64,000 nucleotides of DNA from Anthoceros angustus (lineage: Eukaryota > Plantae > Anthocerotophyta): NCBI GenBank assembly GCA_010909165.1, contig MU008154.1:1105478-1169477 (forward strand), in the 5' to 3' direction. The number at the start of each line of letters is the position of its first letter. Within the stretch, counting starts at the first letter, position 1. Shown piece by piece: positions 384 through 29,804 of the stretch. A model generated the notes under the pieces. That model ran no database searches, was not told the origin of the DNA, and was given only the letters and a program-made list of their open reading frames with translations. Position numbers and translations under genes: made by a program.

Positions 384-670
384 CCCTTATGTATGGAATA
401 CCAGTCTGGTCTGCAGGGAGGCGTGTGTGTGACTTTCTTTTTCGGCGTCTGGTATGGGAATATGCCATGGTATCTTTTAGATACTTATGTACAATACACA
501 TATAATATATGTGCCACATCGACACGTGCGTTGATGCAGCGGGCAAAAACTTTGTATCCTGCGTTCATAGGCACTGGTGTTCGATTGTGCCATCTGAGAT
601 GTATTCTTTAGGGTTTCGGTCCCATCAACACACATACATGTTAAACATGTGGGCAAGACATACATACACA
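384..670 (+). repeat. Left terminal inverted repeat (copy 1)
   Basis: The blocks GTATGGAATACC, GTGTGTGTGACTTTCTTTTTCGG, ATATGCCA, GTGCCACATC, TTAGGGTTTC and GGGCAAGACATACA match the reverse complement of 29480-29804 in order. Confidence 0.85.
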
Positions 671-1009
671 AATTTTAGTTAAGTATGGCCCGTGTGCACT
701 GAGTTCCCATTTGCTCAAGGCCTCGATCTCGCGGTCCTAAGCTTTTCGCCTCGCTCTCGCTCTAGCATTTGTCAGGCGCTCGCTCTAGCATGCGGCGATC
801 TCGCTCTCGCATACATCTAGCGCGACCATCGGTAGAATATGCATGCTCTGTCGGGAACTGATTCGGCATCTCATGGCATGAACATGCCATGTGTAGTCCA
901 ACGAGCATGCTCCTGATCGAAACAGTTCGGCAGCGGCATCTCATGGCATGGACATGCCGTACATGTAGTCAAGCCACTTTGGTATGCCCCTTGCATGCAG
1001 CAGCAGGTT

Positions 1010-2860
1010 ACAAGCATTGTATGTATGCGACTATTTTCATGAAATCCCTTCTACATTGGTCTTTCTGGTACAAGCTTGTTTGGGAGTAGTTGGTGCTATG
1101 TGGCACCCGTAAGCGACGAGCCTAGGAAGCGTTGCAGCCATATGTGATGCGAGCAACACCTGCGACCTTGCCGTGAGCAAGCAGCGCGCCCGCCGCAAAT
1201 ACGATGATGATTGCAAGCGCAAAACCCAGTGCATATGATAAGCGCGGCCTTCTTGCAACCAAGCAGACCCTAACAAATTATGGATGCCGCGATTCGCGGA
1301 CATGATATATTATGGCGAGCCCGTAATGGCGCGGCAGCGCAAATGACCTTCAACGCAACCCTAACCCCAAAGAAGAAAAATTTACGATTAGTGTAGAATC
1401 ATTTTGTGTACCATGGGATAGGTTCACCACATCGTGCATGACATGCGAAATAGTTTCGCCATTATGCGGGGACTATTCTTTCGTGATGCGGCGTGACCCG
1501 ATTATGGAATCTGCGATCCGTCACTAGCGGGGTGTGTGTGACAAGTTTTTTCTTCTGTATTCTACATGAAGATGCGCATCTTCAAGATTCCTTCATCACA
1601 TACGCGCCCGTTAGCGGACGGGGCGTAAGCGCCACGATTTTGTCTCGGGAACTTGCCTATAGGTGTTCGATCTAAGTCATCCACTTTTCTTTACGCCATT
1701 TAGGATTTATGCTCAAACACACATACTCATGTTTTGGGGTTTTCCTGCACACATGGACACATATATCGGATCGGACATGTCTCGGCCCGGTGAAAGCCCC
1801 GTGTGGGCATGCTAGTCGTTCAAGGCTGCGTTTCCCTTTCTCACCGTCGCGTGGCCGGATGTTAGCCTCGAACATGCTCGATCCGGTGTGTTACATCCTT
1901 TTGGCATATAGCGCCAAAATGCAATCGCCGCGGCGCCTAGCGGTGGCGTACATGGCGCCTCAGGCTACGACCACAAGGCTGTATGGCTGCAGGCGTGGCG
2001 CTCGGCGCCCGATGGCCTCTATACGCCATAATTCCCTATGGCAAACCCGGGCGAGATGGGGTCATGCGAATGGATATGCGATGGCCCATGCCTGCACGGC
2101 CCTAAAAAGAAACGCTTGTGTCAAAACCTAAAAGAATCTTCACACACACACGAGGCTTAGTAGCGAGATCGGGGACGCGATGGGCGGGCGCCCGCGGCTT
2201 GATGTCGTCAAGTGTGTACGATTTTTGGTATGCGGCGAGAAAACTCTTTGTCCTATAAAAAAAAACCCTAAAGGGGCTTCACAGCGAGATTATGGAATCA
2301 CCAAGGCGGTCATGACATCAGGATATTTTTAGGGTCATGGGCGAGGAAAAGAAATAGTCCGCGCGTCGGCGAAATTTTCGGCATGTCATGGATGACCACA
2401 TCGGTTGTGGTGCGGCCCCGGTGTCTGCGATGTGGTCAAGCTACCACATGATACGAATGATTCGACCACGGTATGATTGACCACACACGAAACTTTTCTT
2501 CTTTTAGGGTTAGGAGGTTGCGTTGCGGCCATTTTGCGTCGCGCCATTATGACGCAACATACCATGTCGCGGCCATGCGGCCATACACAAGTGTAAGGGT
2601 TGTCGGTTGCGTTAGCGCGGCCTTCGCTATCTAATAGGCGTTTGTCTTTGCAATTATGCGTCTGTTTGCGGCGTCAAAGTGCGTTTGCCCGTGGAAGGCG
2701 CTGCTTTGTTGGCAGGCGCATCGAGGCAGCGTTTCTGCGCGTCACGCCTACGATGCGGTTTCATAGCACCAACTTTCCCGTCTGACTTATACCGGGAGGA
2801 CCAACAAACACGGGCTTCCATGAAAGCGATCGGATGCATACAATCCTTGCACCCAAAAAG
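1010..2860. repeat. Internal long inverted repeat (arms ~1010-1485 and ~2345-2860); possible nested foldback or non-autonomous element
   Basis: Paired blocks: ATTGTATG/CATACAAT, AGTTGGTGCTATG/CATAGCACCAACT, TAATGGCGCG/CGCGCCATTA, AAAGAAGAAAA/TTTTCTTCTTT, CATGACATGC/GCATGTCATG, GGACTATT/AATAGTCC. Confidence 0.75.
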
Positions 2861-5800
2861 CGTCACGGGCACAAATGCAGTTCAAAGGCCTCTTGGACTC
2901 AGCGTGATGATCTGTCCGCCCGCGGCGTGGCACCGGCTGCGTCCCTGCTGGAGGTACTCGGCGATGCCTCCCCGCTCACACTCCACTGCACAATGTCGTC
3001 GGTGCAGTGCGGCGGTACACTCGAGGAGGAAGTCCATGTCAAGCAAGCCCGCGCGCATAGGCATTGTCCCTCGCGACATCGGTTCTGCAGCGCGCCGATC
3101 AGCGCGTTTGATCTGGACAGGTGCAATGCTAAAGGGATGGAACCTCACATGAGGAAAGCAGTGCAACCTACACACAAAGACAAGTGTCTCTTTGCGGTAG
3201 AAGACTCACCGGACAGCGGCTCAATCACCTAGCGGTGGCATCTCGGGGGCACGTTACGTATATTGAGGACCCACGGGCATCGTACTCCTCGCCATCGTCA
3301 TCCATTCCCATATGCGGGTGCGTGCCCTTTGGGGTGAGCCTCTTCACGGAGCTATTGCGGGCACATGGCGAGATGTCCTGTCGCATGGCCCTTATCCTGC
3401 GCTGTGCTGTTCCACACACCCCAGCGTTCGGCTCGCCCTCATGGTGGGCATGAAGGTGACATCAGGAGTGGATGTGCAGGTTGGTGATGTCAATTCAGTC
3501 GGTACTCCACCAAATCCAGCATGTACCCCTTATGCAGGAGCGCCCACTTCTCCCCAGTGACCTTAAAATGCTCAATCCTCTGCGGGCAGGCGCGGTTACT
3601 ACCACACCATACCTCCTCGGCCAAAGGCCATAAGCAACCTGATCGGACTGGTTGTGCAGGCCGCGGATGAAATTCTTGCCGTGTGCCCTTGGCCTCGCGC
3701 AGTTCATGTCGCCTCTATCGGGTTGTGCTCTGCATAGTCGGCCGAATCCATTGGGGATGGCCAAACCTCCTCTTTGCATCCACATAGGCGTTGAAAATGG
3801 TTGTCCCCGCTTGTTATCTTCCGGCACCAACCACGGGGCGTAGTGGGTGGCCCCATCTATTGCACCATGGACTCAAGTAGAATTGAGTGCGACTTGTCAT
3901 ATGGTAACCACATCCATTTCGGTGACCACTGCGGCAATCGCTCCCATTCCAATCTAACGCACAGCACACACCGAGGCAAACTGCTGGAGCCACTCACAAT
4001 CCATGTGCCACATGAACATGGGCGTCGTGTTGGTGTACTTACTCGGATCTGGATGTCGGCCGGCGGGCCATGTCTTCGTGCATCAACCGCGGCGCCTCAT
4101 CACACTCCTTGGGATGTCGATTCCATCGACTTGCACTCACTTTGCAGGCGGATTCTGCATTGGCCGTGCCGTGTGATGGGCGTATGAGTTGCAATGGCGT
4201 GCGAACCTCCACCACGGATAGCCTCCCACCCGCGCGCCATTGGTGCGTTGCGAGCCTCGTCCGAAATCCTCAAGGCTGCCCAAGCTCGGCGGCTCCTTGA
4301 TGGCGCCACGATTGCAAGTGCCTTGCGCCCATACACCCCGGCGTGGCGGAGTGTTGAAAGGCTCCGCTACCGCAGCCCGTCCTCCCCTTCCTCGTGCTCA
4401 TCCCCGCTTGCGGCGCCTCTTCCCCCCTCCGGCCCCCATTTCGTGCATCGCTGCTCGTCTGCGGCCTTCCTCCCGATGGTCCAGTCATCCACAGGTACGG
4501 CCGTCGTGCCCCCGACCACCCGTCATCACGCCATTCGGTGAGCCGCGGCGGCCTCCTCCACGGGGTCGCTTCGCTTGGGGATGGGCAAGGTGGCTTGCCG
4601 CCTCGCGCTAAGCGTGGAAGGCGTTCGCGTGGTTCCGTCTGCTGCCGCAGGGCCTCGCGGAGGTCTATTGCGCCTGACCACAGTGTTATTCAAGTCGCCG
4701 TCGTCGGGTTGAACAAATTGCGACAGCTGCGGCTACCACGGTTGATTGCCGGTTGCACCTCTTCCGCACATCCTGTTCAAATCATCGCGCGCCAGGGCGC
4801 AAATGTGTGCAAGGGGCTTCACATCTTGTGTGTGCAAGATAGGGCCTCGCTCCCTTTCCCCATCACGCCCATGGGTGCGGCCTTGATGGAAGGCTGCAGC
4901 AGCTGATGGTTAACGATGTGGTAGTGCCAAACACCACCATCTGCGGCGCCTCTGCGTGTCGCGGATTCGTGGTACAGCGCGCGCGTGTGGTCTCCTTTGG
5001 TCACCATGCTTGCGGCTTATGCGCGATGCAGGCGTTTGCCTGCGGACAAAACTTCCACCAACTCGCGCAACCGCGTCGTATTACTATCTGACCACTATGG
5101 GCCTCAGGAGCATCACAACACAACCATTGCCGCACGGCTCATTCTGTTCTGGGCGGCACATCGAGGAGGCGGGCCGCCCGGTCCTTCCCCTCAATAGCCT
5201 TGGTTGCTTCCGCAGCAAAACACTGCGAGCAGCGGCACCGCTGCCTTACCTCAACCCGCGGAGGGTCCAAGAAGGCTGCGCGCAAACATGAAAGCATCAC
5301 GATCTTCCGGCAATCAGCGCGTGCCCTTTGCGGCCCCCATGGTGTGCCATGATGATGAGGTCACATGCCTCGATTACTTGGAACGATCCCTCTTCGTTGG
5401 TGAAAAGTCCATGTAGCGGATGAAATGCTCTCCGGTTGTACACAAATGGGAGTGTGGCGGCCCACAAAGAAGTTGTGGCGATCCACATCCACATGCCGCG
5501 ATGCATAATGTGCACCCCGGCGGCGCACAATGTTCGCTGCGGTGCAATGCCCTCGAGGCCCGATCCACAACCAGTGCCCGGCATCACTGCGGCCCCGGTC
5601 CTCTCGACTACCTTCCATGCCCCGCCCGGCGGGACTTTGCGCTCCATCACTTTGTAATCACCCCCACAAAATTGCCTTCCGGCGTACTTTTCGTGTGCAT
5701 GAGATAGGCGATCACGGTGGGTAAAGGGCTTCCTTCTTAGTGCGAAATCCCACGGAGGCACCCATTTCCTTACGGCGCAGCATTTTGCGCGTCCCTATCT

Positions 5801-8800
5801 CAATTGTGGCTCGCGGTCCTCCCGAATGGCATCCAACCGCGACAACATGCCATGCGAGCTCTTTGGCGGCGTTCCGGCCACCTGGGTCCATGACATCCGC
5901 CCACCACGGTTGCTTGGTGCACCCTCAGTGCGGGCCCTGTCATCCTCTCCGCGCCCGGCAAGTCCTTGTGCCAAGCCATCCAGCTCCCCTCCAGCAGAGG
6001 ACCCATTTCCCGGACCTCTCCCGGCCATGCACTTGCGCAGTCCTTTATGCGGCCGGTCGCCCCTCGCGCATGCAGTCGGTGGAATGGATTCAGTTGAATC
6101 TCCCATGTCCATGCGGCGTATCGCCACTCTATGTCATGATCACCGTCGTTTCCATGGCTCCTTGCTTTGGATCAGTGTCCGCGGTGGCGGCCCCTCTACG
6201 GGTCAAGCCCGCCATCGGCAGTCTGACGGTGTGTCCAATACGATGGTGTCGATGGCGGCACATTCTCCGCATCGTCCCTCCATCGTGCCCTCGCCGCAGT
6301 CGCCCCTGACCGCTGACCTCACGCCCGGCGTCCCCTCCTGCCTTGCTTTGCATTCTCAACATCGGCATTGCCAAGCCGCCACTACCGCCATGCCTTGCGT
6401 CAGCACGCGAACTCGCATGGATCATACTCACTTGCGCCCACGAGGAGAATCACATTCGGCGGCGAATCGATGGATATGGGCGGCGCAATGCAAGACACCA
6501 TGGTACCTATCGCTCGTCGCGGTGAGGCGGTACATAAGCCCTCCAAAGCCGTATCCCAACATTCTGCTGCCAATCTAGAAGCGCCTCCGGTACGTTACAA
6601 CCAATCAACATGGGTTTGAGAATTCATGCAACCACCGCTTTGCGCCACGGGACACATGTCTGAAACAAGCTGCCGCCATGCTTACGCAGCGTTGCCTTCC
6701 GTCCTTTGAGGGCGCCATTCAAGCGATCATTTAATGTACGGAAACAAATGTGGCTATAGTATCCCGAATTTCGAGAGGCTTGCGGTTCGCTGCATTATTT
6801 ATTTTGATGCACCTTTGGTGTCGTCGCGCCCGGTGGTCTCCACTGGAACATTGCTGCAATGTATGCAATGTTCTGCGATCGACTAAGCGGAGTTGGTCCC
6901 TGCTTGTGCGACCACTTGCGAGTCTGCGATCACTGGACAACATCATGGAAGCATATTCTGAAAATGACACGCACACGCCGTCTGTAAACAATCGCCATGT
7001 GCTACAACTCTCGTCGCACACTAACCTCACGCGGCATGCGTTCTTCCCATCTACACAGTCGCCGCACAACTTCAACTTAGTGCGCGAAGCGACGCTACAT
7101 GCGACCCGTTAGTTGCGGTTGCGAGGCGGTAAATGCTCCTATCATTGCCGCCCTCTGCGATTACACCCACCACTATGTTTACATGCACGCCTTGCGTTGA
7201 GCTCGTTGCTCCCTCCCTCGGCGCGCCACGTCTCCAGATATGCCACCACATGGGCTTTTGCGAGGTTAATCTCGCCGAGCGAGGCGGCGGTCTTCTCATT
7301 CAATTGAGCTCCGCATATACGAAATCCACCAACTCGTAGAACCTCTAGGCCATCTTTCCACCAAATCGGTGGCCCCGTCGTGCACTGTGCGAACCAAACC
7401 CGGTCATGCCTTTGTTTCTGGTCGCTCCATGATGTACACCTTCCATTCCATCGATGGCCGTTCAAAACTTGATGCATGAAAAGGCACTCCGCCAGACGGT
7501 GGCGCTCGCGATAATTTGTCCACCGCCACTCCATTAGTTTGTCCCCGCGGTGCGGGTGGTATGGGGCTGCAAGTTTTGGATACCCCTCCATTCGAAGGCA
7601 TTGGCTATGATGGTCTTCAACAAAGTCCAAAAACTCGGAGCTCCCTATAGTTGATGAACCATAGGCCACTGACCAATGTACTCTCGAGGCATTGCATCTC
7701 CCACATATCTTCAGCCCGCTTAGGCGTTTGCCCCCGTGTGTGCGAGGCCTTGACGCCAGCCGGCCGCCCGTGACCTCAAGCACACAAGATATTGCACGTG
7801 TTTATCGCCTCCAATGCACATGATCATGTGCATTGGGCATAATGAGCCACCACCACTTGCAAGAACATCCACGTCGACCAAGGCGGTGAAGAGCACGGAC
7901 ATTGATTCACAGTTGCAAGTATGTTCGGATCGGTGCCGAACCTTTGCCTCCACGCCCGAGGATGCTCAAAGTTTTTGATATTCGCTGATTGAGGCGTCAA
8001 TAACAACCCTATACGCTATAACGGTTGGCACCAATCATCCACAGTATCCACTGCGCCACCCTCATCTGGATCTCCACACCACCACACCACAGCTGCAAAG
8101 CTGGACATCACCGGTTGTCGTCAATGCCAAATGGACACTTCGGTCGACCGTCACTTGCCACATGATCCAAGATATTGGTCACGGTAGAACACCACGACTC
8201 CTCTGCGATTCGTCACATTTATCAACACATTCAACACGGCCACCTCAAGTTATCACTTGATTCACAAGACTCGGACACCACAACCATTTCATCACCTACA
8301 TCCACACCTCCACTCAGATACCGGTGGGAAGGCACGTTGCAGCCATGATAAGGCGCAATACACCCGTGACCAACGAGGAAGCGATGGGCGCGGCCACCGT
8401 TGTAGCTTGTCTTGTGGCTGGTCATCTGCAGCGGACAAACATGTACTCAAAGTGTGAACAACGGTATCTAGTTTCAACAAAGCAATGCCCTCACAAACCC
8501 ACACGATGTCCTTCGGAGGAACACGCACACATGCCAACTTGCCGTGCATTCCTCACCTTACTTCAGAGGACCTTGTGTCTGGCCTTGGTAGTAGGAGCTA
8601 TGTCGAGGACTCGTGTGGGTACACTTTCTGTGGGGACAACGTCATCTTCAATTTGTGAGTCTAGCACCTTTGTGCACAGTGTCCTGCCCAAACATGCGCG
8701 AACAACACGAGGCTTTTCCCTCCGGGCATTGGGGTGCGAAGGAATTCACGTAGGCTTCATGTGCCTCCCGGGCCTTGCAAGCGGCAAATTCATCGGCTAC

Positions 8801-10960
8801 AGTGCGAGAAATCGTTGACATCGGCGTCGGTTGGCATAATTGCACCACGATGAGTTGAGATCTTGTATGTAATAAATTTAGTCGAGCGGACTTCCAACGA
8901 AAATGGACAAGACAACAAACACTAGAGAACTGTGGAACATACATATTGGAGACTCCAAGATTTTTTTGCTTTGGTGTGGCCAACCAATTCTTCTTGGTGA
9001 TTGTGACTCAATGTCTTTCCATCGTGTGTCATGGTCAAATTAGTGGTCACCTAACCATGCTCACACCACGATCCTCCACAGGTGGGCCAGTGCGGCCCGG
9101 CGCACCGCTAAATCCAACCTACCTTGGATGCACTTGCCACTCATAGGCGCAAGTGATCGCGGGTTCCTCATCGTCCACTCGGTCCCGCGTACGCAAAACT
9201 GGTAGCGTGGAGGTTTAGCCGGCCGAGTCGTTCTGCAGCTTATTGGCGGTTGCGTGGCCCCATGGTTGCGTGCATAAGCGTCCTTGTTGTATCAGTGACT
9301 GACTTTCAACTCAAGCTACCCGATTCTTTGGCGGAAGGGTTCGTATCCGGCATTGGGGCCGTTGTTGCGATCGCCATTCGAGGCCTCATCTCGGCTCTCG
9401 CACCATCGCCGCGATGTGGTGTGATTTGCGAATCCCCTCTACGCACCACTGACTTGCCTTTCCAACTTATGCACGGTAGCAAATCATTACATTTGGAAAC
9501 CTAGAACCCCACTCGCTCACTTATCCGTCCCCCACTGGCGGAGCGGAAAATGACCCAATGTGCGGCTGCGAGAAGCAGACCCCACCCGCTTCCCTCCCCG
9601 CCCGGCCCCATCGCTCCCGGCACCCTCCGGTGCGATGGCGGGCTGCAATGCGAATTTAAAGGCGCACAATGGCGGGTTGGGCGCGTTCTGTCTTGAGTCC
9701 CTCTCTACATTTTGTTTCAATTCGGAAAAGGGCATCTCGACGCAGGCGTTTAGTACCGCTTCTGGTGTCGGGGATTACTTTTCGGTGTTTACACACCCTT
9801 AGTCTCACCGTTTTTGAGTGGCATTTCACGGCGGTAGAAATGGGTGGATCGCATTGTATTTTGGGCTGATTCTATTTGGCTTTGCTCGCACCATCGCGTG
9901 ATATATAGCCGAGCACCGGCAGAGACACCCTCCGGCCCAGACCCAATTTTATGATTAATACATATACTGTGTCATTCGCTTGATGGGCTGAACTATTTTA
10001 TACCTCATATTATTCTACTCCATTTTTTTCTCCAAATGCTTTGGTGTGGTATAGCGAAAAGGGCAACCGTTGTGGACACTTTGTCTTTCCTTGCCTCCCT
10101 GCTGGCCTTGATATAAGCGTGCATCGGCACAATGCTTTCCACACGTGCACGTGATCGTCCGAATGTAGAATAGATCTTTGGAAATTGGGCTATTGGTACA
10201 TCGAACTGTCGTTTCCCACTTATCACAGGCATTGTATTCCCCACGCTCTTCCCGTGCACCATATTATAATTGAACGTCGGTTTGCAAATATGTGATGCTG
10301 AGCACGTCCGGTCATAGATGAGTTATTTTAAAAGTCGTTTTGCCGGCCGATGGTTCAATTACCTTTATTCAGCCATTTATACTATTCTCGCCCGACATCC
10401 GGTCTCCCTGCTCTATGTCGGATACGTAGTCCATGCTGCCATGTCCAATCATCTCATTATATGCCATTTCGCAGCGTGCACATATCTAAACACCATTCGT
10501 TACAACACAAAAAGGGCGAAGCGCCCCATCATCGTATATGCGGGTGATTTAGCAGAAATAATTCACTTCTCAATATCTGCGTAAAAGATGCACATGACAC
10601 ATTGTGCAATGAAACCTGAAGGCCTTGTATTATTGCGACTACAATTCGCAGGCATATGAAGTACTTGCGTTTTGCAACTTCAGCTTGCTTTCGACCTTGC
10701 ACCCTCTCGGTATAGGCGTATGGCTGACGCGACATTATGCCATTATGTGCTTGATTTTGGTTTTCGGATGGAGTCATACAATATGTGCATTAGATTAGGC
10801 GGGAACTACATTCCAGAACCGCTTTGAGTGCGGAACGTCGCATAAACCCCATGGATTTGCTTCGTGTTCACCGTCTGGTCCGCGATATCCTTGCCAGCCA
10901 ATTTCACGACCCTTTCGCCTGACATGGATAACGATGTCCACTTTGGTGCACATGCGAATT

Positions 10961-11285
10961 TGTGAAAACAAATGGATATGTGAGTCTTGAAAATGAGTCC
11001 GATACATGGCATTGTATCATTCCGGGATTATTCCAGCCAATTGTGCAATGGGCAAATGCAATGGTGCGGTGTGTTTCCCTAGGCACGGGCTTATGGGTCC
11101 ATTGGTGTTATTCCTCGTCCTTCCCCAATACCTCCCGCACCTCCAAAATGCGGCGGTTGCACGATCCTACATCCTCCCTGTGAAAACAAATGGATATGTG
11201 AGTTTTGAAAATGAGTCCCATACATGGCATTGTATCATACCGGGCTTGTCCCAACCAATGGTGCATGCGGCAAATGCAATGGCGC
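10961..11285. repeat. ~105-bp direct repeat pair, 218 bp apart (copy 2 at ~45290-45590)
   Basis: TGTGAAAACAAATGGATATGTGAGTYTTGAAAATGAGTCCSATACATGGCATTGTATCAT at 10961 and 11179. Confidence 0.85.
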
Positions 11286-11949
11286 ATCGTGTTCGCAACA
11301 TGCAGTGCATTGTCGGATGTTTCCCTAGACCCTATTTAGCTAAATGCGTTTGAGATGTTTCTCATTGCAGACCATAACTTCGTAGCCGGATGAAATGCGG
11401 TGTGGGTGATTTTCCCTTATACCACAAAGTAACGAATAAGTACCATGGACGCTCCTCTTCGTAGACCACGGTTCATTGGTATATGAGACAAAATGCAAGC
11501 GATAGATGGCATAGGAAAACCACAAACATTGTAGACATCAATTGAATCCCATGAGCAGTTGTACTACTCTCTACTTGCTCACCATGCTCCATACTTCAAG
11601 GTCTAGCAGTACTCGTAAGTTATCGGTCTACAAACAGTTACTTGTAAGTTATACTTAACATCGGTCCCGATTTCATGGGCCCATCGGCCCTTTCTTGCTT
11701 ATGTTTTCTTGTTTAGGGTTTTAGGATTTCGATCACAACACATACATGGGAAACATGTATACAATACACATACTGCACTTCCATACTTGAGGCCTAGAAA
11801 GCGTTATGGACGGGACCGTATTCCCAAATTCTGACGATACACATAAACTTTTTTCCCATGACCATCTCCTTCAGAATGTGTATGGGTTCAGCTTGACTCT
11901 TCTCAAGGGCGGTTTTGTGCCCTTGCATCAAGCATTTGCTTTGTGCGGT

Positions 11950-12400
11950 GGTGCGAACCAATATAGGACTCCCTAACTTTGTGCATTGGGATATCATCGA
12001 CAAAAAGTGGGGCCACTACAATGGCCCCACTCTCCATCAAGGTGACAGGCGACCGACTATCCACAGCGGTACCTTGCAAGCCTATATGCGAACCTTTCAC
12101 TATCCCAAAGACCATGGAGTGCGAGGTGAAGAACAAGAGTTCACTAGGGTAGTCAGTACCTTCAATGCGAATCACCATGTCCATCATCGGTATCTTAAAC
12201 CCAAGGCCGGAGATAAATATAGGCAGTTGATGAGACCCAATATAGGACTCCGCAACTTTGTGCATTGAGGTATCATCGACATACTGTCAATGGCAGTAAA
12301 GAGGTGAATTAGTGCAAACGAATTTAGGACTCCAACTTTGTGCATCGGGATATCGGCGACAATCTGGGAGCCACTACCATGGCCCCACTCTCTAGTAGGT
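11950..12400. repeat. Three degenerate ~85-bp repeats, with a GC-rich hairpin in the complete ones (copy 2 at ~46300-46775)
   Basis: TAGGACTCC..AACTTTGTGCAT..GRTATC..CGAC recurs three times; hairpin AGTGGGGCCA-CTACAA-TGGCCCCACT at 12006-12031. Confidence 0.75.
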
Positions 12401-13319
12401 CAAAGAGGCGAGGTCCACAACGCCTGTAAGCCTATGCAACAGGAACCCGTCGCGCAATGGCCGCATACCTCCTTGCCGACCCGTTTCCGACCTGCAGATT
12501 CCTTTGCATGGAGTAGCGAAAGTCGTCATTGGCCATTGGCCGGGAGGACAGCAAAGTTCCAGGCGTTAGGCAAGGAACAAGCTCAAATGGAGGCACTAAT
12601 CTCCTCTGGCCGCGAACAGGTGAAATTAGAGTGGTTGCCTGAGGCTCCCACTTGATCACGGTTCAGTCACTAGAGAGAAATGAGACATACTCTAGGGGAT
12701 ATGGCTGCCTTTCCATTCATACAAACATCCACAAACCAAGAATCCACTGGTGCCCACATATATAGGCAAAACCCTCGGGACCTCTTCAGCGTCCTCCTCG
12801 TTCCTTTGGTAGGCACTTAAGGTTTATTTATAATCCTACTTTCCTTGGCCTAAGCAATGATGTTTATGTGCTCAACGACTTATTCGCCCTTTTCCTTGAG
12901 TTACGATTTTAGGTATTTTCCTATAAATCGGCCTATATATGCATCACCATGCCTTACATACATAACCATGTACATACATTACATACTCGACACATCATCC
13001 ATCAACATGTCCACATTCATCAAATGCCATCCATCATGCATACATGGACACAAGGTGAATAACAAGATTTGACTAGGGTAGGGAGTAGCTTCAATGCGAC
13101 GTGCATTTCCATCGACGGTATGCTAAACCCAAGGATAAAATCAAGTATAATGAATGAGCTTGTTCTAAAAGCGGACGACATTTCCAAAGGCGACAAGCGC
13201 TTGCCCGTGAAACACCTCACTGCGAGCACTTGGTAGCACGCGATATCGAGACCGAACACGGCATATCTCATGTAATTGGAGGATGGAATACGAGTTTGTG
13301 TCAAGCAGTATTTTAGGGT

Positions 13320-13550
13320 GCGTGAGGGGCGTGCGTGGTAGGCGGGGGTGGGTAGTGGTGAGAGGCGGGGGTGGGTAGGGGGCGCGGGAGGTGGGTAAGG
13401 AAGCGAGAGGGAATGGGTGGGGTGGAAAGGAGGGGGAGGGAGGAGGGGTTGGAGGCAGGGTGGAGGAGGAGGCGTGGAGGGTGGAGGGGCGGGAGAGGGA
13501 CGGTATGAGGGTGAATGGCGATGGGGTGTGGCGGGGGGTGGGGGTGTGGT
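13320..13550. repeat. G-rich low-complexity tract (C/T-rich on minus strand), G-quadruplex potential; copy 2 at 47700-47912
   Basis: Dense GGG/GGGG runs such as GGGTGGGGTGGAAAGGAGGGGGAGGGAGGAGGGG. Confidence 0.75.
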
Positions 13551-16500: not shown

Positions 16501-17779
16501 AGGCGCGAACACTTGCACCTGCGTGATGATCACTGCGTGTGCGTCCTCTGTGCAGGCAATGTTCTTCGGCCACCTGCTGTACATGGTGCTGGCCACCGGC
16601 ATAGAGGTCAGCCGTCCCATGACCTTTGCGACGCTAGCGCATGCTCTCGGCAGTCAGAAGGATGGCGTGCACAAGGAGTGGAAGGACACAGGCAGCGAGA
16701 AGACATTGAAGAGGGCTTTCAAAGGCGACATCGTCCACCACCACGACTCATGGCCATCTTCTTGCTAAAGCGGGCGCTTCGCCGGGCGAGGAGAACGGAG
16801 CCATATCGGGTCGCACTCATGGCGGAAAGGCTGCGGATTTCTTCACGTCGCCGACACAAGCCATCGCATGTGTTGGGGAAGCGGTGGCGGCGCGCATCGA
16901 GCCGCAGGGCAACACTTGTTCTCCAAGTGCACTGCGTGGGTGGGTTGGTGGGCGAGGATTTCGACATGGTGTGCTGGACAGCGAGCTATCTTTGGGCGCA
17001 TAGAGAGTGCGTTTGAGAGTGTGAGTTCTTCAATGCCACACATGGATGCGTGGACGCATTTCGTTCAAGTTCGGCGCTTGCTTGCCGATCTTGAAGGACA
17101 TGTTGACCGTGCGGGAGATGACATTCGGAGCGGTCGCTTGTACACCTTCTTAGATAGGGTGTACTTCTCCGTGTCTGCGATGGTTGTGGCGGTGCCACTT
17201 AGGCGTATGGGCAAGCGCGCGAGCAAGGCGTGCTCCTCACTCCTCCGCCCTTTATGTCTCAAAGCTGGTCATGGCGGCCAGCGGGTGTGAAGCCATCCGC
17301 ATGAACTCTCTGTGGAAAGCGTGAGCGTTTGTGGTGTCTCGCCGAAGCTTGTTTCGAGGTTCCGGCTTGTTGGTAATGTGCATTTGTGAAGGGCCCGAGG
17401 CCGTGTTGATCGATCGTGAGGCCCAATTTAGTGCTTCACCGTATGTCGAGCCGAATGAAAAGTGGACGGTGCGACCCGTTCTCGTGACATGGAGCGGGAA
17501 AAAAGCCACCGGAACCCCTACACCACCCCGCTCCCCATTGCGGATGCCCCGATGGCATCGCTGTGAGATGGAGCAGCGCGGGGCGCTCAAATCAAGCCGG
17601 GGGGCGGGAAGGCGCGGGAAGGCTGCGGGAAGTTGAATCTGCTGGCGAGGAGGCCTTGCATTGCGGGGTCGCGACATTGAAAGGCGTGAGATGGGTGGCG
17701 GTGCGGCCGGGAAGGAGGAGAACGCTGCGATGTGGACGATCGACCGGGTTGCTTGGCGATGAGGGGAGACACATAGCAC

Positions 17780-18110
17780 GTGCGAATGTGTGGTCTTGGC
17801 GGCGGTGAAACACGTTGACATTACCAAGTTCGTTACGTACAATGGATGCCAAAGGTGTGGCACATTGTTGGAGCAAGAATCTTGCCACGAAATGTGCGGG
17901 GTGGAAGGCGCCGGTCTGCGGTGCAAACTACGGTTGCTATTGGCGGGGCGAGTGGCGAGTATGAGCCACTTTGCATTCCAGTAGTGCAGGCTGCATGCGG
18001 CGGATGGGTTTGCAGGCGGATGGAAGTGGGGCGGCGGCGTGGCGAGGAAGCGGAGGAGGAAGGCGGTTCTGCTGCTCCTTGAGGATTGCGGTGCTCAGTG
18101 CGACCGGCCT
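17780..18110 (+). pseudogene. RPA70 C-terminal (DBD-C)-like OB fold with zinc ribbon, TE cargo, frameshifted
   Basis: ORF 17790-17984, VLAAVKHVDITKFVTYNGCQRCGTLLEQESCHEMCGVEGAGLRCKLRLLLA, fits the RPA1-C pattern: hydrophobic strand, YxxCxxC, second Cys pair, then R-x-K-L-x-L. Confidence 0.6.
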
Positions 18111-20249
18111 CTGTGTTGTCGTGGCGGAGCCATATCCGTGAGGCGCGCGCGAAGGTGGAGCATTGGGTAGAGGCAGTGCGACCCCATTGCATGGGATGAT
18201 GGACAGTGGGTGTCGTTCAAAGGTTGCTGGGATTGTCATTGCGGCTGGGTTTGCAACCACAGCAGTGATAGTTTTGAACTTGCCGCCCATGGCGGTACTC
18301 GCAGTGCTGGCTATAGCAGGCGCCACCGCTTGCGGGGTTATAAGAGTGGTTGATGCAGCGCGCGAAGGCAGGGAGTGACTAGTGCAGCCATATTAGCTGC
18401 GGGAAAGGCAGGATGTTCAAGTAGGATGCAGCCATCTTTGATGCCATGGAGCTACACAATAGGAAGCCTCAGTTGTCACTCAAATAGAGGGATTGAGGTA
18501 GATTGCTGCAACATGGGCCCAGGCAGCCGCCGTTTTGGGTTGACACATGTGATGTTCAATGCAAAGGAATAAAGTGGCATTATATAATGTATTTGGCGAT
18601 CGGGCATGAGAAGGCAACAAAGCGCCGCAACCGGAAATGTGCCTCTGAGTGGCGGCTAAGACCGTGATCAACAACCCCTGATCAGGCAAGCGGTAGGGGA
18701 GTAGCATTAACACCGCATCTTGAGAGCGGTGCGAGAGGCTGCCATGCTGGCCGTGATCGGGGTTGGACAAAGTAGCTTGTTCTTTGCCTTTGGGGCGCAA
18801 TAAATCACATGTGGCAAAAACCCGGTGGGAGGAGGCCATTTAAAATGATACCAAACCACTTGGCATCCACAACATTTATTGGGACGCAAGTTTTGAAAGC
18901 ATTGGCCTTGGTACAAGGAGGTGCCTGCTGTGGAGTGTGCACCCATTCTCAACTACAGGAATGAGAGGAGGCATGGGCGGCGGTGGCGAAGGAGAGGAGA
19001 TGGAGGTCGAGTTGTGGGCACCCGCAACCATGGCGGTGGAGGATTGCGCCATGGAGGAGGCTACACCCACAGTGGGTGAGGTGGAGGGCGTGGAGGACCT
19101 TCCCCTTGGCGGCGCCGTTGGCGCGTTGGAGGAGGAGGGCGCTGCTTCAAGCGCTCCCACCAGCAAGCGCCATGGCGGCGATCCGCTTTGCCGGTGAGGA
19201 GAGCACCACAGGCCGCTCGCTCTCCGTGGCGGCCAGCGGCTTGTACTTGTTTACCCGCCGGAGGAATGGAGCTCGGAGGTGGCGGCGCCGGGCCGCACTT
19301 GCAGCAAGGCTGCGATGCTGGCCGTTCACCGAACATGGTGTGCGGCAGATGGCTGCAAGACCAAGACATGATTGCCCAGGCGATTCATTTGGGGGATGCG
19401 GCGGATGGTGGACGATGCAGAGTGCGGTGCGGCCCCGGGCTGCGACCCTCCGGGGAGGTGCGGTGGTGGCGACCGGCCCTCCTCTCGACTTCGTGGCGGT
19501 AAAGGTCTTTACCGGACATCCAGCCCGGTGGGCTGCTAGGGATGCGGCGGGAGGAGGCGGAGCTCCTATGCCGTGCCTCACTTGATCAGCGGTCGGAGGC
19601 GAGGAGGTGGAGGTGGCGGGGCCGGCACAGAGCCGGCCCTTGGGCAAGGAGGTTGCACTACTGTCCGTAATAAAAATAGCGTATTGTATGATGTGCTAGT
19701 GAATTGAAGGAGAAATGGCCCCCATTCCGGCTGCGTCATTTTATTCGTCACCTAAACAACGTCACCCGCTATGCAAAATGACGTGTGAACGCCACCGGCT
19801 TTATGGTGAGGATCCGGTGGCTAAGCCGGTGCTCGGCTGAGCCACCGAATCGGAAGCCGGCCCGATCCGGTGTTTGTTGGGTGCCTCCACGTCCGGTGGG
19901 CGGGCGGCTTTCGATGGCACTGCGTCCGGCGTCCTCGCCCGATTGCAAATCCCACCTCTCCCCAACATTTAGGGAACCATACGGCCGCCAAATGTCATGG
20001 TGGCCTCTAGCCACCACGTGTCGGGGTGGTGTGTAATGACAGACGACCTTTATGTCATCTCGAACTTTCAAAATGCCGCAAAGGCGTGCCCAAATTCAAA
20101 ATCAAAGTTAAATACGTTTTACTTTTTACAATAGGAGTAACTCTTATGGACTATAGTAATAACAACTAACCACCGCTTGAACACGGGTTACATTACCGCA
20201 TGCGCCGTCTGCCGACCCGCAAAATCAACATTGAAGCATAGCGCCGGCC

Positions 20250-22070: not shown

Positions 22071-22149
22071 TAGAAGAGACACCTTGTAGTGTGGCCCAAA
22101 AAACAGGCCTGAGTGTGGGCGCACACCCCCGGTGACCGAGATTAAAAAC

Positions 22150-25100
22150 AAGGATGGTCCACAGTCAAAATGACTCGAAATGACTCGCACCACACCACGA
22201 GCCCGGTTTGATCGGGATGACCAGAGATGTCTTGAAGTGCGGCCTATATGCCAATGGTAACTAATCGGATGGATAGTGTGATCCCACCGTGCACGGTGTA
22301 CATATAAAAGCCGACTTACGGCATTACATCCACATGCACAAATACTGCGTGACATGTCTTTGGGAAGGTATACGGTCCCGTCTTCAAATCACGCCCATCT
22401 GGCAAGCATGTCGAGTGTCCACCGGCGAAAATCCACAATAATCCTGACCATACTTGGTGGAACTTTGGTTAATGAACACTCGCATTACGTTTAGCACAAT
22501 GGTCGTGAAGTCACCTTCGTCAGACGACCTCTATGATCAACAACTCGCCATAGAACTCCAGGCGTCGTTGGTGCCCACCATGTCAAAAGTACCATGAACC
22601 CATGCCTTGAGTGGACCTCTTGTTCTCATCTCCATCCCAGGAAATGAAAACCCCGCGTGTTCGTGCCTCGATAAGTATTCGTAGTTTGGCGAGGGCCAAA
22701 AGGGCGAATGATGCGATCCGGCTGCCATTCCACCTCCCATTTCTAACGCCTTCAAGTAGCCATGCCATAAAGTCATCAATAGCCCCACCGTCAGTGGTAT
22801 GCTCAGCTCGCATTGGGGCTAGAACTTCTGAGTGCTGTAACAGATACCAGTGCAACCTTTTCCGGTCATCCACATTTAGTGTCACCTTGTGAGCCTGGCC
22901 TATGGTGTGATCCACTTCTTCTGTTGAACGACGACGTCCATTGGCCTCATTGTCGGCCAGAAACTCTGAGGCATAAAACATGGCCTCCATGGCCACATAA
23001 CCTGCCATGGAGCCCTCAGCCGGGCTCGTTGGCGAGCGTGATTTTTCGATACCGGCATAAAGCGCTCCATAGGGTACATCCACCGCCCATGGACTGCTCC
23101 TGCGTCTCAACTTCATCGACAAGGTGCACAATGAGGTGTTGCATGCGTTCCAAAATGTGGAAGGCATGTGCTGCTCCATTGATCATGAGGTCAACAACTT
23201 CTAGCTTCATACCGGATATCGCCACATTGATTTCCTTGCGCACATCCATCGGTATAATGCAGCCTTGTGATGCATTTAAGCTCTCGCGGCGGCAATCGAC
23301 CTCTTAACGCTATTGGCAAATAGTCGCAACAAACAATGCCTGTCATGGCTTTTAAACCGCTTACTTTGGGTCCACAACAACTCTTCAAATTGGCACCGAA
23401 TCCTGGCGGCTTCGCATCAATTCATCTTTCAGCTTGCAGATGAGGTGCCAAACGTAAGAGGCACCGCATATCGCATGTCACCTTCCTCCACAACCCAAAG
23501 CCAAGGTTTGAGTCGTTCTCCTCCATGTCAAACCCGCGCCAATAGTGTCTCCACCCACTTATTACGCCATCGCCTTGCGCTTATTGGCCTCGACATGCAT
23601 GATATCTTTTATCCATAGCTTGCACGTATGGCGTAAAATGCCTCGCAGAATGAGGGCGCACGCCCCAAGTGTTAGGCCGCATCCGGCATGAGCGTCGGAG
23701 ATGCTCCACCTTCTCATCTCATCTACTACGGACAGCATGCGATGAGGGCGGGCGGTCTCGGACCTATTGTTGAAGGCTTCGAGTGGAGAGTCCGTCATCC
23801 ATACATAGCCTCACACCACCGCCCTCAAACAAACATTTATCCAATTCCGCAGCCCACCTAGCATCGAGGCCAAGCCCACAATCAATGCACGCCGCTTTCC
23901 CACGAACCGCAACAACGATCCCAACCACAGGTAGTCACATGTCGCCATCAGAGTGCAGCCAAGCTTGAAAATACACCGAGTCACCAACAGCCCGTGAGTA
24001 ATCCTCACATTGAACACCTTCCCATAGCCGCTCTGACCGAGGGCTCAAGATAGATATCCATGTTCGCACTTGCTTCGAATGATACCGGATAGGAGGATTC
24101 TCCTTCTTGGTGGCAAGGAGGTAGATTGTGGATGACCAGCAGCAAAAAATTATGAATTGGACCTGTGCCCGCTTGGGTTCATACCATCTGCAAATGCTCA
24201 CCGACATTCCTGTCTTCGCGAGTTCCCACTTGATCCAAAGCTCTCCACGCCGGTGTCACGCCTAAAATCGCATCTTTCCATCCGGGCTACGATTGCGAGA
24301 CCACCATGTCATGTCATGTGCCTGACCTCGGACATCGGAAGATGCCGTTCCACCAAAGGGAAATGCCGAACGTTTTCGGGGCTTCACCAGCCTCGCCGGT
24401 TTGAGGCACCCTACAATGGTAACAGTGGCATCCTGCTCTCCCAAGAATGCCTGCAGTCCTTGACATGCAGAAGAGCTTGATTTGTGCCACATGGAGAAGA
24501 ATCCTTTGTGCATCTTGCGGTGGGAGTGTGTTCGGAGAAGGAAGCAAGCGTGTCCGGATGACAAGAAAGAGCTTCGACATTGCGTCGAGACAAGTTGAAG
24601 CTTTCTTGGACCCGGAGGAGAGCCACAATCGCAGAGAGGGTGCTCGCCACTTATGCAGTCCCTCACTATTGAACAAAAGCTTCCCGGCTTCAACGCCAAT
24701 GTCTCGTGCCATCGATCGGGGATGGAATGAATGAGCCCAGCCATGTCATCCTCGTTAGCGGAAACTACTTCTTCATCATCCGATTGTTGTCCGCGGCTCG
24801 GGTTGCACATTGGTCTCGCTCCCACGCCTGTATGGTACCTCACTAAGCTCCTCAATAGAGTCATCCAAAGCATCCCTTGTAGCAACTCTTCCCGATCCAT
24901 GACCTCTCGACCCCTCCATGGTGCCTGACAAAAGCATAAGTGACGACCGATCCCTAAATTGATGGATGCCGACCTTGCGTGAAAGCACCTTTGCATTCGC
25001 TCGTGTATGATGTCCGACATGTCGAGGGCAATATCGAACCGCGTCTCCCCAACGGCTTGCAATGGACATGGGCATCGCACCTAGGAATCGCCTATTCGAC

Positions 25101-25290
25101 GGGCGGAACCATGGTGATGATATACTTGTCCAGCGCTCCCGAACTTGCGAAGCGTTAGGGCCTCTTGTCGATGCATTACGTCCGGTGGGAACCCATTGTG
25201 CGGAAGTGCATTGTTAGCCGCATACTTTGGCATTACGCTTAGAGGTGGGAACACACTCGCTTATATCCAAATCGATTTACGCTCCATGCC
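22150..25290 (-). pseudogene. CACTA TnpD/Tnp2 DDE transposase (Transpos_assoc, Transposase_21, DUF4218, DUF4216), multiply frameshifted
   Basis: Ordered motifs across frames: RCPC; KPRK..HDMTW..DGKMR; LATKKEN..RLWEGV; GKAACIDC; DIMHVEAN; SGLK..DYLPIALRGRLP; MQHLIVHLVDEV; WMYPMER; EGSMAGYVAMEAMFYASEFL; EFYGELL.IEV; DYCGFSPVD. The start is approximate. Confidence 0.9.
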
Positions 25291-25537
25291 TACTGCCTTG
25301 AAAACAAGGCCACCATCTCACGCGAGCACTCCCGAGCACATATACCTCTCTTCGCTTGAAGCTTCTCTTGCTCGCCATGGCGTCCAGGCAGCAATGGGAG
25401 TGAGCGTCGGGAGGCAAAACCCACCGCAAGTGTCGTGGGATCGGGGAGGCACGTTGCAAGTCCTCGAGCGCACCCGGTGATGAGTCAAGACAAAATGTGG
25501 CGTCAAGGGCTTGGTGGGTGAGGATCGGTAGAGGTGG

Positions 25538-26269
25538 ATGAGAGGCCGATTATTGCGCCGTGCGGGAATGGTGTGTACGGACCCGCCCAACCCCGCCTCG
25601 ACTTGGACACGTCGCGGAGCTCCCATGGAGATTATGTGTGTCGCTTTCGGGGCGTGGCGTCCCATCACCGCAATATGGACACCAGCATGGGCGGTGGGTG
25701 ATTCAATTGGCGGCGAGCATGATGAGTGGTTTGAGCGAGACTTTTCCATTGTCGGTGGCAATCGGCGACTCGCCCACGGCCTCTCGGACATGGTCCGGCG
25801 TTGGATGTTCGCAATTGGTGGGTGGCATGTGCGATGCGCTTGGGCACTCGTATCTATCTTGCGTCTGCGAAGGCGTACATTGTCGACATACTGGAGGAAA
25901 TGCGGTCCATCACCCTCGCATTTATCAAGCATGGTGGAGGTGGGGACGCCTGACGCGTGTTTTCATTCCTATCTACTGGGGAGTAAGTTTGACGTTCTTT
26001 GTGTGGAAAGGGAGCCTGTGTTTGAGCCGAATCTGTCTGTACCAATGAGCCGTCCACCAACTGAGCCATCACTGCTTGTGGATATCAATATGCAGTTTGA
26101 TGATATTCGTGATACACAATTGGGCAGACAGGTTCGCGTGCGGACTGTGGGGCCGCCTTGGGACAAGCGTCGCATGGCAATGTGGACCGGGCCCGGGAGG
26201 GTGATGACAGATGTGCTTTTTTCCACAAGCCCCAAAACTGGCGAGCTATGGGTTGTGAAGAAGTCATAG
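25538..26269 (+). CDS. Hypothetical TE-cargo ORF divergent from TnpD (243 aa; possibly a frameshifted composite)
   Basis: One of the longer ORFs, with a globular-looking C-half; broken in copy 2 (59848-60560). No family recognised. Confidence 0.3.
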   Translation: MRGRLLRRAGMVCTDPPNPASTWTRRGAPMEIMCVAFGAWRPITAIWTPAWAVGDSIGGEHDEWFERDFSIVGGNRRLAHGLSDMVRRWMFAIGGWHVRCAWALVSILRLRRRTLSTYWRKCGPSPSHLSSMVEVGTPDACFHSYLLGSKFDVLCVEREPVFEPNLSVPMSRPPTEPSLLVDINMQFDDIRDTQLGRQVRVRTVGPPWDKRRMAMWTGPGRVMTDVLFSTSPKTGELWVVKKS

Positions 26270-28253
26270 GATCACCTTTTCACTGTTGGACATGCTATGC
26301 GTCTGCCGTTTATGTACAACGAGTATGAGCACCTGGTTTGCTACTCAACTCTTTGCTTCAATGAAGAAGGGGCTTCTCAAGTGGTGGCAGGTTGTGTCAA
26401 GATAGTGCGGGCTTGTCACTGCATCTGGGGCAGGAAAGGCTGGGCAATTGTTGCGGGCCAGTTGTTTGCTTTTAAGTTTGAACCGTGCACTCGTCCCTGT
26501 CGTGTCTTTGGGCGCTGGTGGAGATGGATTAGGGTGAATGCCGTCTTGTGTCTTCGATTACCATGCCTCCATGGTAGGGATTGAATTGTTGAGGTGTGGC
26601 ATAGTAGTGGGGGATAAAAGTTTGCAGTGTTTTTGGTTTATGGAAAAGTGTGCTAGGCATTTTGACATGGATAGGGTGCTGGTTTCCAAATCGGCACAAA
26701 ATTGCATGGGTTTAGGTAGGACCTTCTACGATCAAGAGACATAGTAGGCCCTCCTCTAATTGGACCGTGCACAGATGGTCCGAACTTTGTCCGAGGTATG
26801 AACTTGTTATCCTTGGAAGTTTGAGCAAATGTATGAAATAGCGCGATGGGGTGAAAGCAGGCCAAAGCGGGCAACTATTGTGCAATGGCCGTAAGCGGAC
26901 AAACCAGTCCATGGTTCAAATCGCAATGTGTATGCTTGCCCATTGGGTGTACGGCGATTGAAGACCGTCGATCCACCGACGCTACCCTAAAACACCAATT
27001 AGCCGACCCACCTCACCCATGGCGGAAAACTATTGTCAACGGACACCGTCCGATCCATGACTTAGATTCGGTAATATGGCGGAGGCGCATTCCACAAACT
27101 TGCGTAAGTGGCAAACGCTTGTTGACGCGATGCGAAAGTGGATGTCGTTCCTCGCGCGGGCACCGCCCTCTTTCCGTGTGTCAGCTCGAATCTGACGCCG
27201 AGGCTAACACGTCATTCCGGTGGCGTCATTTCCGATGCATTGCGATGGTATGTTGTGGCATAGGCGCTCCGGGGGTGGATGCCACAAGGCCGCAGGAGGA
27301 GGAGGCTGTGGGGAATTGAATGGAGGGAGGTGGAGGGGCAAGGGAGAAATCTCGGAGGACTCCGATGGTAATAACATAACGAGGTTGCCTGTGGTTGCGA
27401 GATGGGATTGACAACAATGCTAATAGGCATGATGGGTTGGGGTTGCGGTGTTGAAGGCGTGGTGAGGCAGGCCATACCAAATCATCTATGATTCGGATGG
27501 CAATTTAAATCCGCTCGTGCATGGGCGCCGTCGAAGATTGAGTCGTTTGGGGAGGCGCAAGCTGCGGCGAGGCGGCCACGCCAGGCGAGTTGGCCGAGCT
27601 CATTGTGGAGCCGGAGGCCGGGTTTGTGGGCGGAAAGAAGAGGGTCGCCCGCCGGCGGCAAACCTAAGCCCGGATGCAAGTCGGCGGGGGAAGATGGAGG
27701 GGAGGCGGGAGGCTCGTGCTCCGGCCCGAGGAGCAGTCTGAGCACCCGGCAAACGGGCGAGCACATCCCAAAGGCGGCCTTGGAGCCTGCGCCCGAGTTT
27801 CATCATGGCGACCACTCGATCATCGTTGATTGCTGATGCGACCATGAGTGGCGCCGTAACGCCTGGAGGTCGTGGACAAGGTGCGACCTTAGGTTGCTGC
27901 TGCCCGAGGTGGAGGGCATGTTGGAGAGGATGCCCCAAGTGCCCCTAACATGCAGTGCACGCGTGGGCAGTGCAGTGCGTTCATGGATATCATGAGCGAG
28001 CCTTGACAGGCTGCAATGGGTGAAGGGCTGCGAGACCACCTCCCCTCCTCGTGCCCACCTCTCCCTTTCCCCGCACCTTTCCATTTCATGCGGGGATGCC
28101 TGCTCCACACCTCCAATTCCACAATAGCGCGGTAGCGCTCATACTGCCTTGGCCGTGCAGTGCCTCTTCCTGTGTGCTCCTCCCTCAGTGCGCGAGGCGC
28201 TCCAGGCGGAGGGCCTGGGGGCACAAGAGGATGGACTCTCGACTCTTTCCAGT

Positions 28254-28415
28254 GAGCGGAGAAGGTTGTAGGATTTTTGGTAGGTAGGTGTTTTGAGCGG
28301 AGAAGGTTGTAGGATTTTTGGTAGGTAGGTGTTTTGGCGGAGAAGGTTGTAGGATTTTTGGTAGGTAGGTGTTTTGGAGGAGAAGGTTGTAGGATTTTTG
28401 GTAGGTAGGTGTTTT
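28254..28415. repeat. 41-bp tandem repeat x4
   Basis: Unit GAGCGGAGAAGGTTGTAGGATTTTTGGTAGGTAGGTGTTTT; units 3 and 4 are 40 bp. Confidence 0.95.
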
Positions 28416-29479
28416 GCGAACTTGAACATGTGCTTTTGTGGCTGCAATTGTGCAAGCTTGAGTGATTGCGCACAAGTGTTGGCTTTTCGGTTTGTTTTGT
28501 TGCTTCAAGGTTGTGTTCCACGGCGTTCTAGAGATTCAGATCCTAATGACACAAGTAGATCGATTCACCGTCATTGTGACACCTAAATCGTTGCACTTGA
28601 GAATCTATCCTTTCTCGAGGCGTGAATCTTGCATCACAAGAGGGGTTCCTTCCTTTGAGCCATGAGGGGTCATCGGCGAAATCCTTATCATGTTGCCCAA
28701 GCAAGACCCTTGCACAATGTGAGTCCGCCACGGCGCAAAACGAGAAACAAAGGTGCAGCAGACTAACAACCCGCATGAATACCGGTGTCACTTGAAGATG
28801 TTGTGTGTGGTCAATTTCCTTCATTTGCCGAGGTTGTATGAGCATCCCATTGCGAAATCCTTCTCAATTTGCACGCAAAGCAAGGCACTTGCATTCGATC
28901 GATCTTGGCTGACTCAACAAAAAGTGAAGCAAAGGTGCAACACGCACGCGCTTTGTCCATCACCTAATATGCTAAGTCTCGGAAAAAGCGTTAGAGTTCG
29001 TCCTCACATGTCCGTCTCCTAAGACACGCGTCGCTCACTCTGCGATGCGACATGAGGAAGAGGGTGTTGGATGCTCACAGTATGTGTGCCCGTGGATGCG
29101 ATGCAAATTCACGATCATCTTGTGGTGCAGGCATCCCATACATCCAGCGCAAGCACAACAAAGCATGTTAATCTGAACCACTGAAGCGTAGGGTGCTCCC
29201 CATCCTCTCCTTCCTGCATATAGTAGAAAGCAACATGTGAGCGGAGGTCGGTTTCTCAACCCTCCACCCGTGCCGTGGATGCGGATGCGATACATCTCTT
29301 GATGCGAAAGGTGTCATACATCCAACTACAAGCATAACACAAGCATGTTAGTACTCAAGCACCAAACGTGGGACTACTCCCACATCCTCCTTCACTGCAT
29401 ATATAGTGAAAGCAACATGTGTAAGCGGAGGATTTGCGTCAGTTCTCGTGACGGGCCATACTCAACAAAAGTTCACCTG

Positions 29480-29804
29480 TGTGTATGTGTTGCCCGCCAT
29501 GTTTGTGTGTATGTAGACCCGATGGAAACCCTAACACCGTCATCAAAAAAAGGTCATATGACACCATCCCAACACCGGGCCGATGAGCGTGTGATAGAAT
29601 GTTTTTCCAGCGTCTGAACCCGTGAAGCTGATGTGGCACGTATTATACGTGTATTATACGTGAGTATCAAAAGATTCCGTGGCATATCCTCGTGGCGTAC
29701 ACCCGAAAAAGAAAGTCACACACACACTCCCGTGTGACCAGATCGGTATTCCATACGAGATCGGTATTCCATAGACCAGATCGTCGGTATTCTATACTTA
29801 TGGG
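29480..29804 (-). repeat. Right terminal inverted repeat (copy 1), terminal motif triplicated
   Basis: Contains CCGAAAAAGAAAGTCACACACAC and GATGTGGCAC; GGTATTC(C/T)ATA occurs three times at 29745-29797; ends TATGGG. Confidence 0.85.

Follow-up and report, generated by a model that had tools for sequence, protein, structure and literature searches.

A probable single insertion of a large, CCC-ended CACTA-type transposon within a tandemly repeated block of an Anthoceros angustus contig

Does a 29.4-kb unit bounded by long inverted repeats in Anthoceros angustus carry a set of accessory genes of its own, or is it a CACTA transposon of ordinary gene content and unusual size? We addressed this question in a 64,000-nucleotide stretch of contig MU008154.1 (assembly GCA_010909165.1, positions 1,105,478 to 1,169,477 of the forward strand), hereafter the window, which is numbered from its first base. 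The unit spans positions 384-29804. An initial annotation, made from the letters and their open reading frames (ORFs), had described it as a CACTA-family element with TnpD and TnpA genes and more than 20 kb of gene-like cargo. In our analysis, a large cut-and-paste transposon of the CACTA/En-Spm (CMC) type, 29.4 kb in length, probably inserted here once; it is contained in a 34,489-bp block that is repeated head to tail, with the differences between the two copies being noise. The claim of a multi-gene cargo is unsupported on the present sequence.

The unit is delimited by a long terminal inverted repeat (TIR), both ends of which begin with CCC. The left terminus lies at 384 (CCCTTATGTATGGAATACC...) and the right terminus at 29803/29804 (...GGTATTCTATACTTATGGG(G)), reading CCC(C)ATAAGTATAGAATACC in reverse. 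By self-comparison, the TIR core pairs 391-520 with 29756-29630 at 80% identity over 133 bp, and a more sensitive comparison lengthens the pairing to 391-693 against 29756-29451, with 71% identity over 318 columns. With a 12-nt seed, this is the sole inverted repeat of at least 30 nt in the 34.5-kb unit. The left TIR and subterminal region occupy 384-693 on the plus strand, with the weaker pairing extending from the core up to 693, and their right counterparts occupy 29451-29804 on the minus strand. The left end has a single copy of a terminal 12-mer, GTATGGAATACC, and the right end has three inverted copies arranged in tandem (29745-29756, 29763-29774 and 29786-29797), of which the outermost bears the CCC(C) end. 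When up to 2 mismatches are allowed, the window holds 13 matches to this 12-mer against 3.5 expected, a number reached by 0 of 100 shuffles. Inward of the right TIR, self-comparison revealed a subterminal repeat of two tandem copies of ~180 bp (29090-29448). Its two parts, 29090-29247 and 29272-29448, each match both of the corresponding units of the second element copy (63420-63632 and 63636-63848, themselves 95% identical) at 81-85%, and a direct match of 29137-29247 to 29315-29431 shows 79% identity. Four copies of a 40-bp tandem repeat lie at 28256-28416. Repeated subterminal motifs are thus present in both ends, as the 12-mer and the ~180-bp tandem units; in characterised En/Spm elements, such motifs are binding sites for the element's own proteins, a role that they may also play here. 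The TIR, the 12-mer repeats and the base composition agree that the CCC-ended, TIR-bounded, GC-rich unit of ~29 kb is real, as had been proposed. Scanning metagenomes with a 20-nt pattern of the TIR returned only seven matches, chance ones of 20-24 nt.

A transposase remnant of the TnpD (CACTA) type resides well inside the right end, on the minus strand at 22586-24745 in the first copy, as short pieces in three frames. In a Pfam search of 100 ORF pieces, four transposase pieces, each searched singly, matched, two per copy. The clean match is in the second copy, where 57990-58346(-), inside ORF 57843-58565(-), aligns to Transposase_21 (PF02992) with E=7.5e-14 and 51.9 bits (gathering cut-off 28.6) over profile positions 99-211 of 213. 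Of this domain, which would bear the DDD/E triad, a single frame covers just the C-terminal half. In an Atlas search, 29 of the 30 nearest clusters were Transposase_21, from fungi, rotifers, plants and arthropods; the Atlas search with 22586-23182(-) was uninformative. Further along the gene, a weak DUF4218 match in the second copy (57066-57383(-), E=4e-4) is the counterpart of 22903-23106(-), which carries a 30-residue DUF4218 match (E=1.5e-4) and is the sole ORF piece of the first copy to reach Pfam significance. The Transposase_21 stretch of the first copy is interrupted by a 300-bp patch of one-sided deletions at ~23710-23990. Three motifs that we take to be TnpD-like, and regard as leads only, are HNLPP (24116-24130), WMYPMER (23062-23082) and PAEGSM (23006-23023); both copies show motifs of this kind in one and the same order along the minus strand (~24.7 to 22.6 kb). 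No N-terminal transposase-associated domain was found in these pieces. The TnpD gene of the initial annotation is therefore present on the minus strand at ~22.6-24.7 kb, with a clean Pfam match in the second copy alone, and the PF02992 match and the Atlas neighbours support the assignment to the CACTA/CMC superfamily. A 557-bp stretch that is identical between the copies contains at least two frameshifts of the DUF4218 region, so either the gene is broken in the underlying element or the same consensus error occurs in both copies.

The second copy of the element is explained by the architecture of the window, which comprises 1.86 periods of a direct tandem repeat of 34,489 bp. Positions 1-29597 align to 34490-64000 as a single piece, and the alignment begins 383 bp outside the element. 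The AT-rich left flank (1-383), which is built of ~114-bp tandem units, recurs at 34490-34880 ahead of the second copy and is common to both copies up to the last base before CCC. The second copy occupies 34881-64000 on the plus strand and is truncated by the end of the window at the position equivalent to 29597. Because the repeat includes the left flank of the element, the second copy is not evidence of transposition; it is the same insertion, duplicated with its flanks. As support for a mobile multi-gene unit, the initial annotation had named one cargo order recurring between the same TIRs in different flanking DNA. This is missing here, since the sole other copy has the left flank in common with the first and is offset from it by exactly one period of 34,489 bp. 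The locus shows how a seeming second copy can be a tandem repeat of one locus. The block is either a very young segmental duplication or one locus assembled twice. The AT-rich ~114-bp repeat (26-29% G+C), found at 24-275 and 34512-34770, adjoins the left side of the element, and the duplication junction may lie inside such repeats.

The two copies are 87% identical and differ by 1,741 indel events, nearly all of 1-3 bp, and 1,273 substitutions, with a transition to transversion ratio of ~1. We read this 13% difference as patchy consensus failure of a long-read assembly rather than as divergence. Single-base indels stand beside an identical base in 46% of cases, against a background of 45.6%; natural slippage mutations would differ from such a placement, which lacks any preference for identical bases. 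The direction of the indels is grouped in one-sided runs (z=-14): at ~23710-23990, for example, the first copy is short of ~27 bases scattered over 300 bp, with long stretches of perfect identity on either side. More than 30 columns away from any indel, only 17 substitutions remain in 5,661 columns, most of them adjacent to one another and ~3 isolated. The noise is also local. It amounts to ~75 indel events per kb between the copies at 1-20000 and 28000-29600 and their counterparts 34490-54600 and 62500-64000, whereas 20-28 kb is mostly identical; perfect runs of at least 150 bp number 12 (5 kb in total) in 20-28 kb and none in 1-20 kb. As a result of this noise, the reading frames of the first 20 kb are untranslatable. 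Merging both copies with all indel bases kept barely reopens them, and the longest new frame of the merged sequence, 467 residues, is rich in Arg, Ala and Gly and not protein-like. Frame repair by dynamic programming was rejected, as an indel choice every ~13 bp can open any strand. An apparent 13% divergence can thus be assembly noise that also breaks frames, and calls of gene content in this part of the assembly are unreliable.

Under the reading that we favour, a single CMC element with long imperfect TIRs that start with CCC instead of CACTA, and with repeated subterminal motifs, would have inserted at this site, presumably by cut and paste. Its minus-strand gene for a TnpD-type DDE transposase is frameshifted as read, and the copy looks non-autonomous or dead. 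We lean towards regarding the other ~24 kb as non-coding or foreign sequence that inflates an ordinary element, rather than as accessory genes. The block of 34,489 bp, made up of the AT-rich flank, the element and a 5-kb host spacer, would then have been repeated head to tail.

By definition, a CACTA element has CACTA/TAGTG ends, a 3-bp target duplication, a DDE transposase and an ORF2 (PMC4158355). The present element shares with the plant CACTA/En-Spm elements described there a TnpD-type DDE transposase in which Transposase_21 is followed downstream by DUF4218, TIRs with repeated subterminal motifs, and a transposase gene placed well inside one end. It differs from them in its CCCTT.../...ATGGG ends, in lacking a visible 3-bp duplication and a recognisable ORF2/TnpA, in a TIR similarity of ~130-300 bp that far exceeds the short canonical TIR, in its large size of 29.4 kb, and in a transposase that has no close relatives by sequence search. 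By its transposase, it belongs to the CACTA/CMC superfamily and would work like a member of it, if an atypical one. In size, it resembles the En/Spm families of the red alga Chondrus crispus, which are likewise far oversized for the superfamily (16-20 kb) and, with 4-5 ORFs, offer a precedent for extra ORFs, as far as the account of Kojima et al. 2013 given in PMC6431247 goes. That likeness is one of description; the host here is a land plant, and extra ORFs are not demonstrated. Soybean Tgm is a CACTA element carrying gene fragments, according to the mention of Zabala and Vodkin 2007 in PMC4158355; like Tgm as there portrayed, the present element consists mostly of sequence other than transposase, and unlike it, it contains no recognisable fragment of a host gene.

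The interior is GC-rich, as the initial annotation had stated, with 50-64% G+C against 26-47% in the flanks. From 700 to 9800 it is C-rich on the plus strand and no gene can be named; a local minus-strand three-base periodicity occurs there in the second copy only (39600-44300, z=+4.2). Next, at 9800-13100, comes a block of lower G+C (40-50%) that contains short dispersed repeats and lacks a coding signal. From 13200 to 20050 the sequence is G-rich on the plus strand and has a coding-like periodicity on that strand with no family match. Composition, strand skew and assembly quality all shift abruptly at ~20.05-20.08 kb, and beyond the start of the transposase, up to the right subterminal repeats, lie mostly clean sequences with no periodicity and no family match (25400-28200). 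Where the strand asymmetry flips, at 13200-13600, the G skew is very strong (+0.45 to +0.74) and accompanied by low complexity of the GGAGG type, which is read on the minus strand as a proline-rich run.

For the periodicity we used a noise-tolerant statistic, which takes for each 90-nt window the strongest bias of G towards one codon phase and compares it with shuffles of that window. The transposase block, which served as calibrator, gave z=+3.4 and +2.5 on the minus strand and ~0 on the other. Plus-strand values at 13.2-20 kb were z=+4.2 and +3.7 in the first copy and +1.4 and +5.5 in the second, the minus strand at 39.6-44.3 kb in the second copy gave z=+4.2, and 0.7-5 kb, 9.8-13.1 kb and 25.4-28.2 kb gave no positive signal on either strand. 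At 18.15-19.2 kb, G at codon position 1 rises to 0.45 in the frame of two open pieces and without simple repeats. In Pfam, the ~80 other ORF pieces from within the element (both copies, both strands, some picked by an in-frame composition score) gave no credible match and two chance-level hits (E=0.19 and E=0.2), so that the more than 20 kb of gene-like cargo yields no gene that can be named. In 1-20 kb the indels cut true frames short, and most of the long ORFs there are wrong frames that are poor in stops. Scans for Rfam families and tRNAs were empty, and neither blastn nor tblastx found internal duplication among the interior blocks. Three smaller stretches within 13.2-20 kb drew our attention. 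A reading of 17330-18110 as RPA70-like finds no support, with no Pfam match for its tested ORF pieces and no sequence match in the PDB for two of them. By eye alone, a piece rich in Cys at 17763-17981(+) resembles a zinc finger. A 78-residue open piece at 18142-18375(+), in the frame enriched for G at the first codon position, has two hydrophobic, helix-like runs; it matches no family beyond SLATT_3 at E=0.2, which is probably an effect of composition.

Nested elements were sought by several routes, all of them weak in noisy sequence. When presence in both copies was required, no nested TIR pairs appeared around 20-28 kb or in 0.6-20.4 kb; no pairs of long terminal repeats (LTRs) were found inside the element; and CACTACAA ends were no commoner than chance. 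Signature motifs of retroelements, Helitron, MULE, hAT, PIF, Ulp1, ParB, methyltransferase and SET proteins, which make a weak test, gave no convincing hit. An interior that resolves into known nested transposons, which the initial annotation had considered as the alternative to its own view, thus shows no LTR, nested TIR or motif sign in these weak tests.

Several observations weigh against a single CACTA-type insertion without accessory genes. CACTA/TAGTG termini are not present, the ends reading 5'-CCCTT ... ATGGG(G)-3'. A target-site duplication, which the initial annotation had proposed to define, does not appear as any 2-4-bp match beside the ends, TGT preceding the left CCC and GCT (or CTA) following the right GGG; a single insertion site in noisy sequence makes this weak evidence. 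The predicted TnpA was not found either, as the ORF pieces at 20-22.5 kb in both copies matched neither Transposase_24 nor any other family; ORF2 proteins are poorly conserved. No relatives came from word-index searches with 24265-25080(-) and 57843-58565(-), and when 22586-23182(-) was compared by phmmer with the full set of 1.8 billion representatives, the one hit was spurious, a protein of 7,296 residues without a tblastn match to the window. The transposase pieces may thus come from a divergent lineage or from damaged frames. In the interior, the periodicity at 13.2-20 kb (z=+3.7 to +5.5) matches in strength what the transposase region shows (z=+2.5 to +3.4), and because of this signal and the enrichment of G at the first codon position, some real coding sequence at 13-20 kb is plausible. 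The Pfam negatives for 1-20 kb are low in power, since the copies differ there by an indel every ~13 bp. Lastly, the observed to expected ratio of CpG is ~1.0 inside the element, compared with ~0.5 in the host spacer, which argues against long decay. A ratio of ~1 would be unusual for an old methylated plant transposon, and random assembly errors would also push it towards 1.

The strongest competitor, a possible if doubtful one, is an ordinary CACTA element of ~8-10 kb, made up of 20-29.8 kb and the left end, into which later insertions or captured host DNA have brought the sequence at ~0.7-20 kb. The abrupt change in composition, skew and assembly quality at ~20.05-20.08 kb and the lower-GC block with dispersed repeats at 9.8-13.1 kb are consistent with such a history, whereas the failure to find a nested TIR pair, an LTR pair or a transposon signature motif speaks against it to the extent that weak tests in noisy sequence can. 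More improbable is the giant CMC lineage, in which an interior of ~20 kb would carry its own accessory genes, transcribed on both strands from ~13.1 kb, made unreadable by noise and absent from Pfam. Four strand-asymmetry blocks in which the strand presumed to code has more G than C, like that of the transposase block, point in that direction, along with the periodicity that both copies show at 13.2-20 kb and that is also seen at 39.6-44.3 kb, the in-frame enrichment of G at codon position 1 at 18.15-19.2 kb, ORFs of at least 100 residues that are ~2 times as frequent as in block shuffles, an interior free of LTRs and nested TIR pairs, and the Chondrus En/Spm families of 16-20 kb with 4-5 ORFs, in the outline given by PMC6431247. 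However, not one accessory protein matches any family, solved structure or database protein, stop-poor GC-rich DNA yields long spurious ORFs of the kind seen in the merged 467-residue frame, and the only second copy shares the flank of the first. Here the giant multi-gene lineage finds no support, nor is it refuted, the frames being lost over 1-20 kb.

Least probable, in our view very much so, is that the CCC-ended TIRs belong to a host element of a different kind, with a nested CACTA element having left the TnpD remnant inside it as a fragment. Such an arrangement would account for ends other than CACTA and for the missing 3-bp duplication, but no CACTA-type ends or inverted pair surround the transposase region, a second transposase was not detected, and long TIRs with subterminal repeats fit CACTA habits. 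The single CACTA/En-Spm insertion remains our preferred reading.

A broader proposal, to which we give little credence, would be a CCC(T)-ended En/Spm lineage of land plants. Its members would regularly measure 17-30 kb and carry conserved accessory genes of no described family, divergently transcribed from the middle. If conserved accessory genes did reside in the interior, the element would be a cut-and-paste transposon with cargo in a plant. Fungi offer well-documented cases of such transposons and a red alga offers hints of them; to our knowledge, they are not established for plant CACTA elements.

The element copies are separated by 5.1 kb of host spacer (29805-34880), which carries an ORF of the RING/IBR type. 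This ORF (31292-31816(-)), open over 175 residues, was alone among five spacer pieces in matching Pfam (zf-RING_UBOX, E=1.8e-6; zf-C3HC4, E=8e-6; IBR, weak), and it is probably an exon of a host gene for an RBR-type E3 ubiquitin ligase. The spacer also contains two copies of a 55-bp tandem repeat, at 33059-33169.

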